DNA of 64,000 bases, taken from positions 1 through 64,000 of the forward strand of contig CAXIUT010000110.1 of the NCBI GenBank assembly GCA_964035545.1, in the 5' to 3' direction. A program made the translations under genes and the position numbers. Positions 50,001 to 56,000 of the stretch are shown in pieces (within the stretch, counting starts at the first letter, position 1; each line of letters begins with the position of its first letter). The stretch comes from Bugula neritina. Its lineage: Eukaryota; Animalia; Bryozoa. The notes under the pieces were generated by a model. The model had not been told where the DNA came from, did not search any database, and was given only the letters and a program-made list of their open reading frames with translations.

Positions 50001-53000
50001 ATGTGTAGGCGATGGACTCTGTTTCAAACCTATTACTATAAAGATAAAATGAGAGTTTGATGTGAAATAACAGCGACATCAACGCCATGCTGTTTTGCCA
50101 TGACAAATGATTTTGTTGTGGTATGATTTGCTATTCCAGCACACCACGTGCCATGCTTTCACTACTGGTTTACAATTTTTTCATAATCCCCCACCCCTAT
50201 CCCTTTGTAGAATTATGCAGATGCTTTGAGTGTCGGTCTTTTATTCCAGAATCTAAATTCTAGAGTCTAGATAGTTGTTTGTATATAAATATGCTTTGCT
50301 CATCTTGTGTTATAGTCATAAAGATGTGTATGAAATAAGATCTATTTTGTGTACTTAACATTAAGCTATCTACTGAAACAAGACTATGAACACTCTCAAA
50401 TCACCGTCATAACAATGTACAGAGGTCAAGAAATGAAAATCAAACGGAAAATGCAGGAATTACAAAATGTGGATCATCAGAAGGTTAAAGTGACATCAGT
50501 TGATAATTTCCAAGGTCAGTTTGAAAGTATATATAGTGGCAGCAACGCTTTGCTATCACTAAATCAACAAGTGAAACCTTAATTAGAGCTCACTGTGTCA
50601 GCACGGATGCTGTTTGGCACGGATGCCCATGTATTGTAATTCACTTAATGAAGGGTGAATGGATGGAGGACACAGATGCAGGCCACAACTCTACTTTTTG
50701 TCTATTGCCAACAGTATATTTGAACTCACACTCACACTTGAACTCAAACTCGAACTCATACTTTACTCGTATTTTACTGTAACCTATAACCATGAAAATT
50801 ACAAACATATTGTTAACTTAACATTTTTTACATAGCTGACAAAACATTTAGTTAATGAAGTTCAAAACAAAAGATAATATAATACTTGATACTCACAATT
50901 ATTTTGACAATTAAGAATAGATTGCCTGCATCTTAAGCAGGAGGAAAACTGAGCTACACTGACTCATCAACCAAAAACTGTCAGTAAATAGCTATCGCGA
51001 AAGCTTTCACAAATAGCTTTCGTTACACAATGGTTTTTGGAAAGCTGCCAAAAAGCTACTGAAACACTCACAAATGTTTAATTTTATCTTTTAAAACATA
51101 AATAGACTTGAAATGAGTTTTATTATAGGCCTGCTCAACATAAATAACAACAGTAATAAGTTTGTTTTGTGCTGAAAAACTGACTTTTTGCTCATTTTAG
51201 ATTTTATACTTTTCAAAGATATAATATTTCATTATTTTAGTATTATTTGTGTCACTGCAGGAGAAGAAAGTGACATCATCATCCTGTCCTTAGTGAGGAG
51301 TAACAAGGAAGGAAAATCAGGTTTTGTGAAGATAGAAAACAGAGTGTGTGTATCACTCTCTAGAGCTAAACTGGGCATGTATGTCTTTGGTAACTTTGAT
51401 ATGATCTGCAAGGACTCAGGTATGGCAAACAAATTATTCTAATACAATCATGAGTCAGTTGGTTTGCTTTTAATAAAAAATTATTTTAGTTTTACATCAA
51501 AATAAAATATTCTGGCTGTTTATATACCTCTCAAATGACAAAAAATACTTTACATAGTTATCACAAATTGTTTTACTAGAATAATGAAATTAATTTAAAT
51601 AAATGACATAAAAATATAACTTTGGTTTAGCTTTGATTCTACTAAATAGTTACTGTTTGCAATAACTGACTGGCACAGCTATAAAAGCATAGCTTTTGGC
51701 AGAAACAGTTATTCTACTACAGGTGCTAAGTCAGTCAATACTAGTAGTACTATTTGTTAGTACTACTGATACTAACAGATGCGACTATAACCAATGCTAA
51801 TTTTTATAAGCAGTTAAGTGAAAATATAAACGCAACTTTAGTCAGTTTTGAAATCCTAAATATGCCTTGTTTACAATAGTAGTTTAAAGTAACTTTTATT
51901 TATAGAAGATATAATATTTATTCTAAGATAAGAAATTATCTAGCACTGCAGTATTGTAGTGTTAACCTACCAGGCTAAGCTCTAGCTCCAGAGTGTTCCT
52001 TGTTGGCTTTCCTTCGGCTATCACTTGTCAGTAGCTTTAGTACTTGCTAGCTTGTAGCTTGTCAACATCAGATCATCTTACATGCTCCCTCCTTACAAAA
52101 GAGAAGCAGGGCACAAGAGCACATTTTCAGAATGCCAGAACACATATCTATATTATCATCATCATGATGCTAATAATTCCACATGCCCTTTTCTTTTAAA
52201 AGAGAAGTGCAATCAATTCAAACAAAACTAGCTTTCAACTAATGCCTTGAATACTTAAACTTATTATGAAGTGGTTCAAAGTGGCTCAGTCCTAGATGTC
52301 GAATTCCACCTCCTCCCATTGCTAGCACTGTTGGGAAGAACAATGCCAAATTTGACATTTATCATATTATCTGCAAGTGAAGTAGCAGCAGGGGTCAAGG
52401 CTGACTTCTCTTGCTAGCTTGCAGAGTCTCCTATGAGTTAAACTAAAGAACTCACAGGAGCAGACAACATTATTGGCAATGTTGATGTCATGTCAGTACT
52501 GAGGTCAAACCTCACATTTATCATATTATCTGAAAGTGAGATGTCGAGGGTCTGCATATAGACTACACTCGGCTCACACCCCGTGAAGCAACAGCGAGGG
52601 TCACAACTGACTTCTCTCGCCGGCTTACAGAGTCTTCCATGAGTTAAACTCACAGGAGCACACAACATTAGTGCGGTAACTGCTTCTGCCTGTCATTTCT
52701 TAGTATTCCACTGCAATAATGTGTTTATATCATTACAGTGAACATCAACACACTTTTCCATATCTACAACACACATGTATCATTTTATATCAACATTGTA
52801 GATCCAGCAATTTTAACCTAGTAATATCAGCTATACCAAGCAAATTTTCGGTAAAGTTTGCCAATACATAAATCTTGGTATCCACAAATCTGTTGAAGTA
52901 GCCAATGCAAACCTTAGCTCTGCCTAGCACATTCACCAAAGACTTATCAACCCCTGTAATATGCTTATCTGGTTCCTTTAATTTAATGTTCAATTTTTCT

Positions 53001-56000
53001 GCAGTAGCCTCAGTAAGTGTAGAAACTTCAGACCCAGTATCTAGCAAGAATTCTACACGTCTACCACTAACTAATAAAGTCCTTGTTATTTTAGGACTGA
53101 CATTGTGATTATAAGTCCCATCACTCTTTGTAGAAAACTTCATTGATTTTAGGGAGTCCATAACTCCGATCCTGTTTTCTCTTTGTTCCACATATCTCTT
53201 TTTGTGATGGTATCTTTTGTTATCAGAACAATCTTGAGCAATGTGGCCGAATTCCTTGCACATGTAGCAACGGGTTTTAGGACAGTTTCTCACATAATGT
53301 CCTGTACGGTCACATCTAAAGCATCTGCCATGACTTTTGTAAGCATTTTGCAATTTATAACTACAATGTTGATATGAATGACATGCCTCTTTTTTCTTTG
53401 AAAAAGAGTTGTCTCTATTGATAGAAGTTGTCTTATCGTAATTAGATCTATGTAGAACTTTATCTCTTTTCTTACAGTGTTCTGAACTACCATTAGCTCG
53501 GTAAGAATATGTGAGTCTACCAATTGACTGTTCATCTATGCATTCATTGTTTATTGCATTTAAAGCATCCTCGGAAAGTTTACCTAAATGTGCAGCACGA
53601 CTTTTCCTTTTCAGCTGTTCCCAGCTTAGATTAGCATGCTGCAACAAATGTCTACGTAATCCTGCATTTCTTAGACCATTAACTGCTAGCGCAACTGCAA
53701 ATCCCATTCTAACATCATCATTATTGCCAAAGTTTATTGCTCTACTTAGCTTCTCAACTCTTAGCAAATAATCAATTTCGTTTTCTCCACAAGCTTGGGT
53801 CACAGTGACAAACTTCATGGTTTTCACATAAAATGTATCATCTCTATCATAGTGAGATTGCAGTAAGTCTAAGGCTAACTCATATCCATCATCAGAGTTA
53901 TTATTTAAATCAAAACCTAATGACTGTAAAGTATCAAGACCTTCTGGCCCTACAGCTCCTAACAGAGCTAAAAGCTTTCTCCTACCTCTAAATCTGCTAA
54001 CCTGTTCATCCCCTACTACTTCAAACCCTGCATTAAGAGAAGTAACTTCTATACTCAGTTTAAATTGAATGAGCCATGAGTTCCAAGATTTGGTTATGTT
54101 GCTTTCATCCAACTTTAATTTAGGAAAAGCATTAAGGTCTAATTTGATGTCTTCATGAGCCATACTACACTTCAGCAGTTTTAATAGAGTAAATAAACAA
54201 TTTAATTTTAAGCAGCTATCTCGTGATTATGCACTGTACTCTCAGTTTCAATCCCTGGGCGCATCCGTGTCTCTCAAAGTTTAATTCTCAGTTCCTTTCG
54301 CCGGCACTCTTATTCTGAATCTATTAGTATTATTTATAAATTGCTCAAAAGTCAACACTCACCACCTTTCTCAACAAGCCTCTCAACTCTTTTTTCTCAA
54401 ATGTAAACCTCTGAAGTTTAGTGAACTCCAAACAACACACTTCTCTCTTTTGTAACTCTTGTCTCCTCAATATCCTGCCGACTGCGCCATGTAGTGTTAA
54501 CCTACCAGGCTAAGCTCTAGCTCCAGAGTGTTCCTTGTTGGCTTTCCTTCGGCTATCACTTGTCAGTAGCTTTAGTACTTGCTAGCTTGTAGCTTGTCAA
54601 CATCAGATCATCTTACAGTATAACTACTTTATATTGTAGAAATTTGGGCAAAAATAGTTAAAGATGCGCAGGCCTGTAGAGAGTTTGGTGAAGAGTTTAA
54701 CCTGAGCTGTGTTCAACACTCAGAGCCCGCTTTAGTGAAAGTCCCCGAGGATTTTAAAAAGAAAGCTCCGTTTGGTAAACTTTCATTTTAGAACAAATTA
54801 TTACTAGTTTTAGATACTATGGATCCTCAAAGTTCCTGTAAGTCTTATTAAGTAAAAACAACACTAAAATATTTTTTTGCATTTACAATCAAGTTTTTTT
54901 TAGATTTTTTCAGGTTGCAGTTTCAATTAATTTATTCAATTTTCTTCTGCAGGTTTTGTAGAGAAAACAACTCATTATATTGATACTCATTTGTTGAAAA
55001 TATTTTGCAATAGATTTGCGATTTTCTACAACAATAAAAATAAACTTGAATCTGATAAAGTTTAACAGGTAAATTGGAAAACTTCTAATTTAAGAAGCTA
55101 GTCAAATGCCAATGATTATAATTAGCAACTTGTGTTTTGAATTTTAACATAATATTTTTATGGACTAATTGATACTAAATCATTCAAAAATTAGCTACAT
55201 ATGCTATTGAATGGATATTATGAAGGGGTTTAGCAGGCCTCAAGGAATAATGGTGAACGTTCGACGTACATGCACCTGTAGAGCCCCCTTCACTTGACTA
55301 CTGGTTTTTGAGTAAGGGTTTTATGCAAATTTAAACTTCAGCTTTCATTTTTACAGAAAAAATATTTAAGGCTTGAATAAGGTTTCCTTTTAATTTCACC
55401 CTAAAGTTGTTATAATTGCGTTAGTTAAAACAAGCTTTAGAAATAATGAGCGACAGTGGTGGGCCTTGTACCAGAGCCATATAGCCAGATGTTAGGGTCT
55501 GCAGCTTACTGAGAATTGGCTGTGTGCTAATCACAAAAGTTTCCATATTTAAATACAACTTTATTAAAAAAAAACAAGTTGCAATAAGTTTAAAATACAA
55601 ATTTATTTTAAGTTTAAATGCTAGCTGTCCCTAACACAAGTGATGCATTTATAATAATAGCTATAGTATGTTATTAGAACTTTTTGGTTTAATGATTTAA
55701 TTTAGTCAGAATACGTAATATAATATTAACTATAAAATAGGTTTTTTGATCATACATAGTATGTTATTTTTCTAGTGTAGTTCCACACACACTATATGAA
55801 AGTAATATAAAGTTATGAATATCAATTTACCATCTACTTCAGGAGGTTGCAGAAAAGTATGTGGAAGCGCTCTACCAAATTGCAGCCATAAATGCAAACT
55901 CTTCTGTCATGTGACAGATAGCTCACACTTGAATTATCACTGCAAAGAAAAATGTGAAAAAACATGCAGAGCTGGTCGTCATCCCTGTGCAGGTGAATGC

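Follow-up and report, generated by a model that had tools for sequence, protein, structure and literature searches.

Can an LTR retrotransposon that encodes only Gag and a protease (PR) propagate as a lineage of its own, or is such an element a truncated copy of a longer one with no future? The question is raised by a 2.66-kb element lying on the minus strand of a 64-kb stretch of DNA, which we analysed as a whole and refer to as the window. The GC content of the window is about 30%.

A structurally complete LTR element that lacks pol

The element spans 2663 bp (window positions 51955-54617, minus strand) and is structurally complete. The sequence-only reading had described a recent insertion with identical LTRs, a 4-bp TSD, a PBS, a PPT and one uninterrupted ORF for Gag, two CCHC motifs and protease that stops right after the protease and leaves no remnants of RT, RNase H (RH) or integrase (IN), and our analysis bears out each of these points. 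The 3' LTR (51955-52082) and the 5' LTR (54490-54617), both on the minus strand, are direct repeats that match at 128 of 128 positions when compared again by script, and each begins with TG and ends with CA when read on the minus (sense) strand. GTAT, read directly on the plus strand and checked by script, flanks the insertion at 51951-51954 and 54618-54621, so that the locus has both the TG..CA terminal repeats and the short TSD that mark an LTR retrotransposon. With zero differences over 128 bp per LTR, the upper bound on the divergence between the LTRs is no tighter than about 2.3% (95%), from which, given usual invertebrate rates, we infer an insertion age of a few million years at most. 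The identical LTRs, together with the 4-bp TSD, thus point to a recent mobilisation event.

The signals for replication in cis are in place at both ends. The 12-nt PBS, TGGCGCAGTCGG (54478-54489, minus strand), adjoins the 5' LTR, begins with TGG and occurs twice in the window, where 0.02 occurrences are expected by chance; we take it to be of the tRNA-Ser type. This assignment draws in part on a table of Mag elements (PMC3286476), and ARAGORN found no tRNA genes in the window with which the PBS could be compared. The purine-rich PPT, AAGGAGGGAGCA in the sense orientation (52083-52094, minus strand), was located by script and adjoins the 3' LTR. An Rfam scan of the whole window at gathering thresholds matched no family and no hammerhead ribozyme, and the element therefore does not qualify as a retrozyme.

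Between these signals, a 5' leader running from the PBS to the start codon (54164-54477) is followed by the single ORF (52790-54163, minus strand), which reads from ATG to TGA over 457 aa, and then by a 707-bp non-coding 3' region (52083-52789) that includes the PPT. The 3' region contains an imperfect direct duplication, 52347-52475 against 52506-52673 at 77-88% identity, which the sequence-only reading does not mention. We searched the whole element on both strands by tblastn at E ≤ 100, using as queries the PR-RT-RH-IN segment and the integrase C-terminus of element A, a related element in the same window; the PR-RT-RH-IN query matched the protease alone (E 1e-9), and all matches outside the protease proved to be noise. 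RT, RNase H and integrase have all been lost from the element.

The ORF encodes a capsid, a nucleocapsid and a complete protease

Pfam assigns two zf-CCHC domains and an Asp_protease_2 / gag-asp_proteas domain to the ORF, and structure prediction supplies the remainder. The capsid domain (about aa 10-210; 53534-54136) was modelled by AF2 with a pLDDT of 93.8 as a two-lobed, helical retroviral capsid fold, for which the best Foldseek matches were all capsids (PNMA2, MOAP1 CA-CTD, Arc, dArc1, HIV and MLV CA, and copia). The nucleocapsid (NC), with its two CCHC zinc knuckles (aa 280-315; 53219-53326), gives profile matches to retroviral NC. This pairing of a two-lobed capsid with a CCHC nucleocapsid is as expected for Gag of the Mag lineage of Ty3/gypsy (Metaviridae).

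The protease (about aa 355-457; 52793-53101) is of the retropepsin type and carries a DTG motif. Its predicted fold is that of a complete retropepsin: in Foldseek, the alignment with EIAV PR covered 104 of 104 residues at a TM score of 0.79, M-PMV PR scored 0.79, and the RVP domain of DDI1 was also matched. Similarity to the PR of autonomous relatives extends as far as ...LKLL, with the stop coming four codons after it; therefore, the ORF holds the whole protease and nothing beyond it. With this intact 457-aa ORF the element falls outside the TRIM and LARD classes, which have no coding capacity.

The element is not a deletion product of element A

A second copy of the PBS 12-mer (38443-38454) adjoins the 5' LTR of element A, whose domain order is PR-RT-RH-IN. 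It had been proposed that the two elements share an identical PBS and a clearly homologous, diverged Gag while their LTRs are unrelated, that the Gag-PR element is therefore not a fresh deletion of A, and that it fuses Gag to PR without the UGA found in A. All of this withstood comparison. The 12-mer is identical, with 24 of 25 nt matching when it is extended; identity is 44% in the capsid domain, 31% over the NC-PR part and 40% in PR; and blastn finds no similarity between the LTRs, whose termini differ beyond TG/CA. At 44% amino acid identity, the dN/dS comparison with A is saturated. In element A an in-frame TGA (36784-36786) separates gag from PR-pol; at the corresponding point the 457-aa ORF has sense codons.

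The further suggestion of a Mag-like helper finds no support as far as element A is concerned. The copy of A in the window is defective: its gag is frameshifted, its integrase is interrupted by a MITE-like insert and its 3' LTR is missing. The LTR ends of A differ from those of the Gag-PR element, and PBS identity is to be expected among tRNA-Ser-primed Mag-type elements generally (PMC3286476). The PBS common to both elements is probably a family trait.

A second copy and the closest relatives

Three database proteins, P0029, P0046 and P0082, which are 80%, 85% and 93% identical to the Gag-PR protein, respectively, derive from one 4334-nt JGI contig. They represent a separately sampled copy, decayed and frameshifted and known only as these three pieces, and the C-terminus of P0082 falls on exactly the same residue as that of the 457-aa ORF. 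Since the window copy is intact with identical LTRs and the JGI copy is frameshifted, the two are different insertions, and the truncated Gag-PR form, judged from these proteins, has probably been copied more than once. RT could lie in another frame after the stop codon of the JGI copy.

The capsid tree joins the Gag-PR element with the gag-only P0001 group as sisters, with a support of 99 and at 70% identity, and places element A elsewhere within the same 24-row clade. On this phylogeny the closest family is P0001, which is presumably autonomous, and not element A. The protein collection does not contain the element's own protein; its best match to the pol of A is 72% identical, the nearest pol-borne PR is 51% identical to that of the Gag-PR element, and for gag the closest relative shows 50% identity overall and 70% over the capsid. 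The retroelement relatives of the window come from environmental or run assemblies only, which, with the GC content of about 30%, speaks against human DNA. Viral contigs and prokaryote genome contigs yielded no related loci, and the DNA pattern of LTR end plus PBS had no match in viral contigs; its sole match among genome contigs, L002, lies on a genuine GC-rich bacterial contig and was accordingly set aside as a chance match.

These relatives bear on the possibility that the element is a one-off internal deletion of an autonomous element, produced by template switching or after insertion, and is thus a dead-end copy, which we consider unlikely. Such an origin fits a window that holds the only DNA copy seen and, over its 64 kb, no other fragment. 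It also fits the frequency of short deletion derivatives in the Mag-like family, an example being L001, the single related locus in a scan of metagenome contigs, which is 28% identical and whose gag ORF, on a contig of 1.85 kb, closes with a tail resembling the integrase C-terminus. However, a separately sampled and diverged copy shares the end residue, a deletion would need to have spared precisely one whole protease, and the loss of the stop between gag and PR would constitute a second, independent change. A weaker argument in the same direction is that no close full-length relative was found in 1.84 billion representative proteins, among which the host genome is seemingly not included.

Proposed mobilisation in trans

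We favour, as the probable explanation, a non-autonomous Gag-PR lineage that is mobilised in trans and borrows RT and integrase, the cis signals (LTR ends, tRNA-Ser-type PBS and PPT) having all been kept. Under this proposal, the RNA of the element would be translated into the Gag-PR polyprotein, which would assemble into particles, package that RNA through the two zinc knuckles and be matured by its own protease, while reverse transcription and integration would be carried out by the Gag-Pol or the RT and integrase of a related autonomous element, whose proteins would co-assemble or act within the same cell. A precedent by analogy for the first steps is Drosophila copia, in which the spliced Gag-PR product is sufficient to make particles and to process itself (PMC11835246). 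In copia, however, Gag-PR arises by splicing from an autonomous Ty1/copia element and is not a separate genomic element.

The Gag-PR protein might instead act mainly as an interfering capsid protein, whether competitor, dominant-negative partner or incipient host restriction factor, with transposition being incidental. Every translated molecule of the element carries protease, 1:1 with Gag, whereas in A the TGA limits PR-pol, and conservation of the capsid is good. Fv1, enJS56A1 and Ty1 p22 are established restriction factors of Gag origin. Identical intact LTRs, the TSD, the PBS and the PPT, on the other hand, are the attributes of a mobile element and not of a fixed host gene, and we regard interference as the main role as improbable; it is compatible with mobilisation in trans. 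That the arrangement is an assembly artefact or due to chance is scarcely credible, for although the neighbourhood abounds in repeats, among them nested elements and an 8-kb duplication, the LTRs match at all 128 positions, the TSD copies agree, the PBS and PPT are correctly placed and the uninterrupted 457-codon ORF encodes three domains with confidently predicted folds.

Comparison with known systems

The trans-mobilised Gag-PR lineage that we favour has its nearest counterparts in plants, where, in agreement with the sequence-only reading, Gag(+PR)-only derivatives have been described. ATHILA of Arabidopsis (Ty3/gypsy) has LTR-bounded deletion derivatives with only gag and protease and without RT and integrase (PMC11735389), and the wheat Fatima subfamilies RLC_famc1.4/1.5 (Copia) keep only the gag and protease ORFs (bioRxiv 10.1101/363192); both are seen as the non-autonomous partners of autonomous elements related to them (PMC11735389; bioRxiv 10.1101/363192). 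The Gag-PR element has the same composition, being bounded by LTRs and carrying gag and protease without RT, RNase H or integrase. The plant derivatives, however, belong to other clades, reach high copy number and recognisably stem from an autonomous family that resides in the same genome and has related LTRs, while the element described here is Mag-like, with Gag and PR fused by loss of the read-through stop. TR-GAG elements, described from plants only, by definition lack any sequence resembling protease, RT, RNase H or integrase (Chaparro et al. 2015, PMC4350172). The Gag-PR element resembles them in its size below 4 kb, its LTRs, PBS and PPT and its single ORF with Gag, and the second of the at least two copies expected of a TR-GAG family is seen as protein pieces only; it differs in carrying a complete retropepsin and so is not Gag-only.

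Within Ty3/gypsy, elements of the Mag lineage such as Bombyx Mag and mosquito cqgypsy have LTRs of about 120-300 bp, a tRNA-Ser PBS and TSDs of 4-5 bp (PMC3286476). The short LTRs, presumed PBS type and TSD of the Gag-PR element agree with this, as does the PR-RT-RH-IN order of its relative A. Mag elements are autonomous and 4.5-5.3 kb long; at 2.66 kb and without RT, the present element is called Mag-like on grounds other than an RT phylogeny.

Domesticated genes form the last comparison. PEG10 retains Gag plus PR, as does RTL1, and Arc and PNMA retain Gag. All have the capsid fold in common with the element, with PNMA2, MOAP1 and Arc among its top fold matches. They are fixed host genes without LTRs, PBS or TSD, whereas the Gag-PR element, with its identical LTRs, TSD and PBS, is freshly inserted and mobile. 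For annotation, this means that intact Gag-PR ORFs could pass wrongly for domesticated capsid genes.

The Gag-PR-only design, already known in plants, has seldom been reported for Mag-like, probably animal, elements. The animal origin named in the sequence-only reading is given here as probable, since no host gene was identified in the window. Should a propagating lineage be confirmed, the range of non-autonomous LTR elements with Gag(+PR) only would reach beyond plants to a Mag-like, probably metazoan, family. With its 2.66 kb, one ORF and intact cis signals, the element would then also be a compact natural system in which to study which functions a retroelement must encode and which it can borrow, how capsid compatibility sets the range of helpers, and whether such elements compete with or restrict them.

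Recurrence of Gag-PR ORFs

Gag-PR ORFs that stop 3-40 aa past the protease, or that carry a conserved non-pol tail, occur in at least five separate places in the capsid tree, and the Gag-PR branches require at least seven changes. These recurrent ORFs are all found on contigs of 1.9-3.2 kb, whereas contigs of 4.5-10.7 kb carry many of the gag-only relatives. A possible, still tentative reading is that such "satellites" represent a recurrent and selectively maintained strategy of the Mag-like family, in which repeated independent loss of the stop and of RT-IN yields elements that make a self-maturing capsid and take polymerase and integrase from a related autonomous element, or poison its particles. 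If true, (probably) animal genomes would harbour a parasite-of-a-parasite system that works at the level of the capsid. Some of the database proteins may belong to autonomous elements, as their gag-pro ORFs, or may stem from decayed copies with a mutated gag stop; P0167 and P0002, members of the same 90% cluster, differ by a stop versus a Cys at the end of gag. The group of P0002, P0168 and P0003 has a conserved tail in common, and P0004, P0170 and P0172 are three distinct, intact 528-aa Gag-PR copies that are 99% identical.

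A recently inserted element with Gag and protease alone

The Gag-PR element, a 2663-bp LTR retrotransposon, is present at positions 51955-54617 on the minus strand, as first read from the sequence. Its LTRs (51955-52082 and 54490-54617, minus strand) are 128-bp direct repeats of 100% identity that begin with TG and end with CA in minus-strand sense, and the target-site duplication (TSD) GTAT flanks them at 51951-51954 and 54618-54621. A 12-nt TGG-initiated primer-binding site (PBS) adjoins the 5' LTR, while a purine-rich tract adjoins the 3' LTR. The sole long ORF (52790-54163, minus strand) extends over 457 aa from ATG to TGA, and Pfam identifies in it two zf-CCHC knuckles and an aspartic protease (PR). 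When the PR-RT-RH-IN region and integrase C-terminus of element A, a neighboring gag-pol element, were compared by tblastn with both strands of the Gag-PR element at E values up to 100, only the protease was matched, and the 707 bp from the ORF stop to the 3' LTR therefore contain no pol remnant. Within this 3' region, a stretch of about 130-170 bp is imperfectly duplicated in direct orientation. The sequence-only reading had reported identical LTRs, a 4-bp TSD, a PBS, a polypurine tract, one Gag-CCHCx2-protease ORF and no remnants of RT, RNase H or integrase, all of which we recovered. The cis signals and the Gag-NC-PR gene are intact, RT, RH and IN are absent, and the element integrated recently, with a TSD.

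The ORF encodes capsid, nucleocapsid and one complete protease

An AlphaFold2 model of the ORF product, built from 61 homologues, has good confidence at residues 10-210, at both knuckles and at residues 355-457, with disordered linkers. Modeled alone, the N-terminal 215 residues reach a pLDDT of 93.8, and their fold matches only capsids: the PNMA2 capsid, the MOAP1 CA-like CTD, the Arc C-lobe, dArc1, HIV and MLV CA, and the copia capsid. Their E-values are only modest (1.7e-3 at best), yet the hits are all of one kind. The family profile matches retroviral nucleocapsids, and the modeled C-terminal domain spans the full length of solved retropepsins, aligning 104 of 104 residues with EIAV PR (TM 0.79) and matching M-PMV PR (TM 0.79) and DDI1 RVP domains. 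Given these capsid, nucleocapsid and full-length retropepsin matches, the ORF is CA-NC-PR. Homology to the protease of pol-bearing relatives stops at ...LKLL, 4 codons ahead of the ORF stop; judged from these alignments, the ORF retains exactly one whole protease and nothing past it.

Element A is a distant relative

Element A (about 32321-38657, minus strand) is Mag-like, with an in-frame TGA (36784-36786) between gag and PR-RT-RH-IN. The Gag-PR ORF has sense codons at that position, and Gag and PR are thus fused, as had been proposed. The 12-nt PBS occurs twice in the window (chance expectation 0.02), its other occurrence adjoining element A's 203-bp 5' LTR (38455-38657, minus strand), and the match reaches 24 of 25 nt with its extension, bearing out the claimed identity. 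Besides the PBS, blastn between the two elements found no LTR or leader similarity, and the LTR termini are unlike beyond TG/CA. Identity is 44% over 161 aa of capsid, 31% in the NC-PR part and 40% in the protease. The earlier description of a homologous but diverged Gag with unrelated LTRs therefore holds, and the two elements are only distant relatives. We rejected PBS identity as singling out element A as helper, because Mag-lineage elements typically have a PBS of the tRNA-Ser type (PMC3286476).

This copy of element A carries several defects: gag is frameshifted near 37520-37535, and the 3' LTR is missing. A 762-bp AT-rich insert (33450-34211), a MITE-type DNA transposon in appearance, interrupts its integrase and has 26-nt terminal inverted repeats (33450-33475 and 34186-34211) that are 96% complementary. 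A further ORF of 239 aa, containing three CCHC knuckles (32290-33009, minus strand), lies downstream of the integrase end and overlaps it; it may be a third ORF of element A, a captured sequence or a fragment from another element.

A second copy and recurrent Gag-PR ORFs

A word-based search returned 28 relatives of the Gag-PR protein (best 50% identity), and an exhaustive HMMER search of 1.84 billion representative proteins returned 1412. The three closest all lie on one 4334-nt JGI contig: P0046 (query residues 18-114, 85% identical), P0029 (153-394, 80%) and P0082 (391-457, 93%), the last of which terminates at the very residue that closes the Gag-PR ORF. Taken together, these three protein pieces are a second, frameshift-broken copy of the family. 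As the copy in the window has an unbroken ORF between identical LTRs and the JGI copy is frameshifted, the two are different insertions, probably of a form that was truncated beforehand.

The sequence-only reading had proposed a Gag/PR phylogeny with element A. In a capsid-domain tree (maximum likelihood, quick method, 94 rows), the Gag-PR element's Gag is sister to gag-only P0001/P0173/P0174 (support 99, 70% identity), from contigs of 6.2 and 4.6 kb, and element A falls elsewhere within the same well-supported 24-row clade. ORFs running from Gag through a whole protease to a stop occur at several separate places in the tree: P0007 stops 3 aa past PR, P0004/P0170/P0172 28 aa past it and P0002/P0168/P0003 39-117 aa past it, and P0049 and P0075 likewise stop after the protease. 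Starred branches force at least seven architecture changes. P0004, P0170 and P0172 are three distinct intact 528-aa copies at 99% identity. All such Gag-PR proteins come from contigs of 1.9-3.2 kb, versus 4.5-10.7 kb for many gag-only relatives, some of which share those contigs with pol proteins; these sizes are circumstantial, and would fit recurrence of short Gag-PR elements in the family. A caution comes from gag-only P0167 and Gag-PR P0002, which belong to one 90% cluster; at the gag end the former has a stop and the latter a Cys codon, so the fusion alone can arise by point change.

P0002/P0168/P0003 have a common conserved tail after the protease, neither RT nor any Pfam family, which may be a novel domain appended in a sister Gag-PR lineage. 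On metagenome contig JAAUYE010049253.1 (1854 nt), positions 92-1306 encode a 404-aa Gag-CCHC ORF, 28% identical to the Gag-PR protein, and its final residues are similar to the motif at the integrase C-terminus of element A; it is probably one more short derivative that arose in this superfamily by internal deletion. Beyond this locus, a scan of metagenome contigs and two of genome contigs yielded nothing useful.

Proposed non-autonomous propagation and its alternatives

We lean toward the view that the Gag-PR element is a propagating non-autonomous lineage. Gag-PR would be translated from the element's RNA, then assemble and self-mature, as the spliced copia Gag-PR product does (PMC11835246), with RT and IN provided in trans by a related autonomous element. 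The helper would likely have a compatible capsid, nearer the P0001 type than element A. That the element is a one-off deletion product seems rather unlikely: the JGI copy ends at the same residue, and no close gag-pol protein is present among the 1.84 billion representatives, an absence that means little because the host genome is evidently outside that set, which also lacks the element's own protein and matches element A's pol at 72% at best. A role in interference or restriction, compatible with a propagating lineage, is quite improbable, and the chance of an artefact is negligible.

We class the element as a Gag+PR non-autonomous LTR element, a known type, here in a Mag-like family. The features of this family make an animal origin likely. 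Such elements had been said to be described mainly in plants, and the literature agrees: plant TR-GAGs are defined without protease similarity (PMC4350172), a definition that the protease of the Gag-PR element breaks, and the closest described architectures are the gag+protease-only ATHILA derivative of Arabidopsis (PMC11735389) and those wheat Fatima subfamilies that have gag and protease. Full-text searches found no Gag+PR-only LTR elements described outside plants, an absence that is not proof; a mosquito survey reported only non-coding non-autonomous LTR elements (PMC3286476). To the known type the present element adds a single fused Gag-PR ORF and apparent recurrence.

Surrounding repeats

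Copies of one 792-bp host segment flank element A (31529-32320 versus 38658-38709 plus 44073-44815, 98.9% identity). That length far exceeds any TSD, and the arrangement points to aberrant integration or local duplication. An acidic exon seemingly lies within this segment. Its second copy holds element B, a 5.36-kb LTR element (38710-44072, plus strand; GC up to 60%) with 353-bp LTRs, 99% identical, and a GTAG TSD; the corresponding empty site can be seen at 31577-31580. Domain searches detected Gag-CCHC, protease and an integrase zinc domain in element B, with no RVT_1 match. The two copies of an 8-kb direct duplication (22-8083 versus 55023-62439, 85-94% identity) are 55 kb apart, with the Gag-PR element some 400 bp upstream of the second one. 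A tandem array at 48011-48372 comprises about 9-11 copies of a 31-bp unit.
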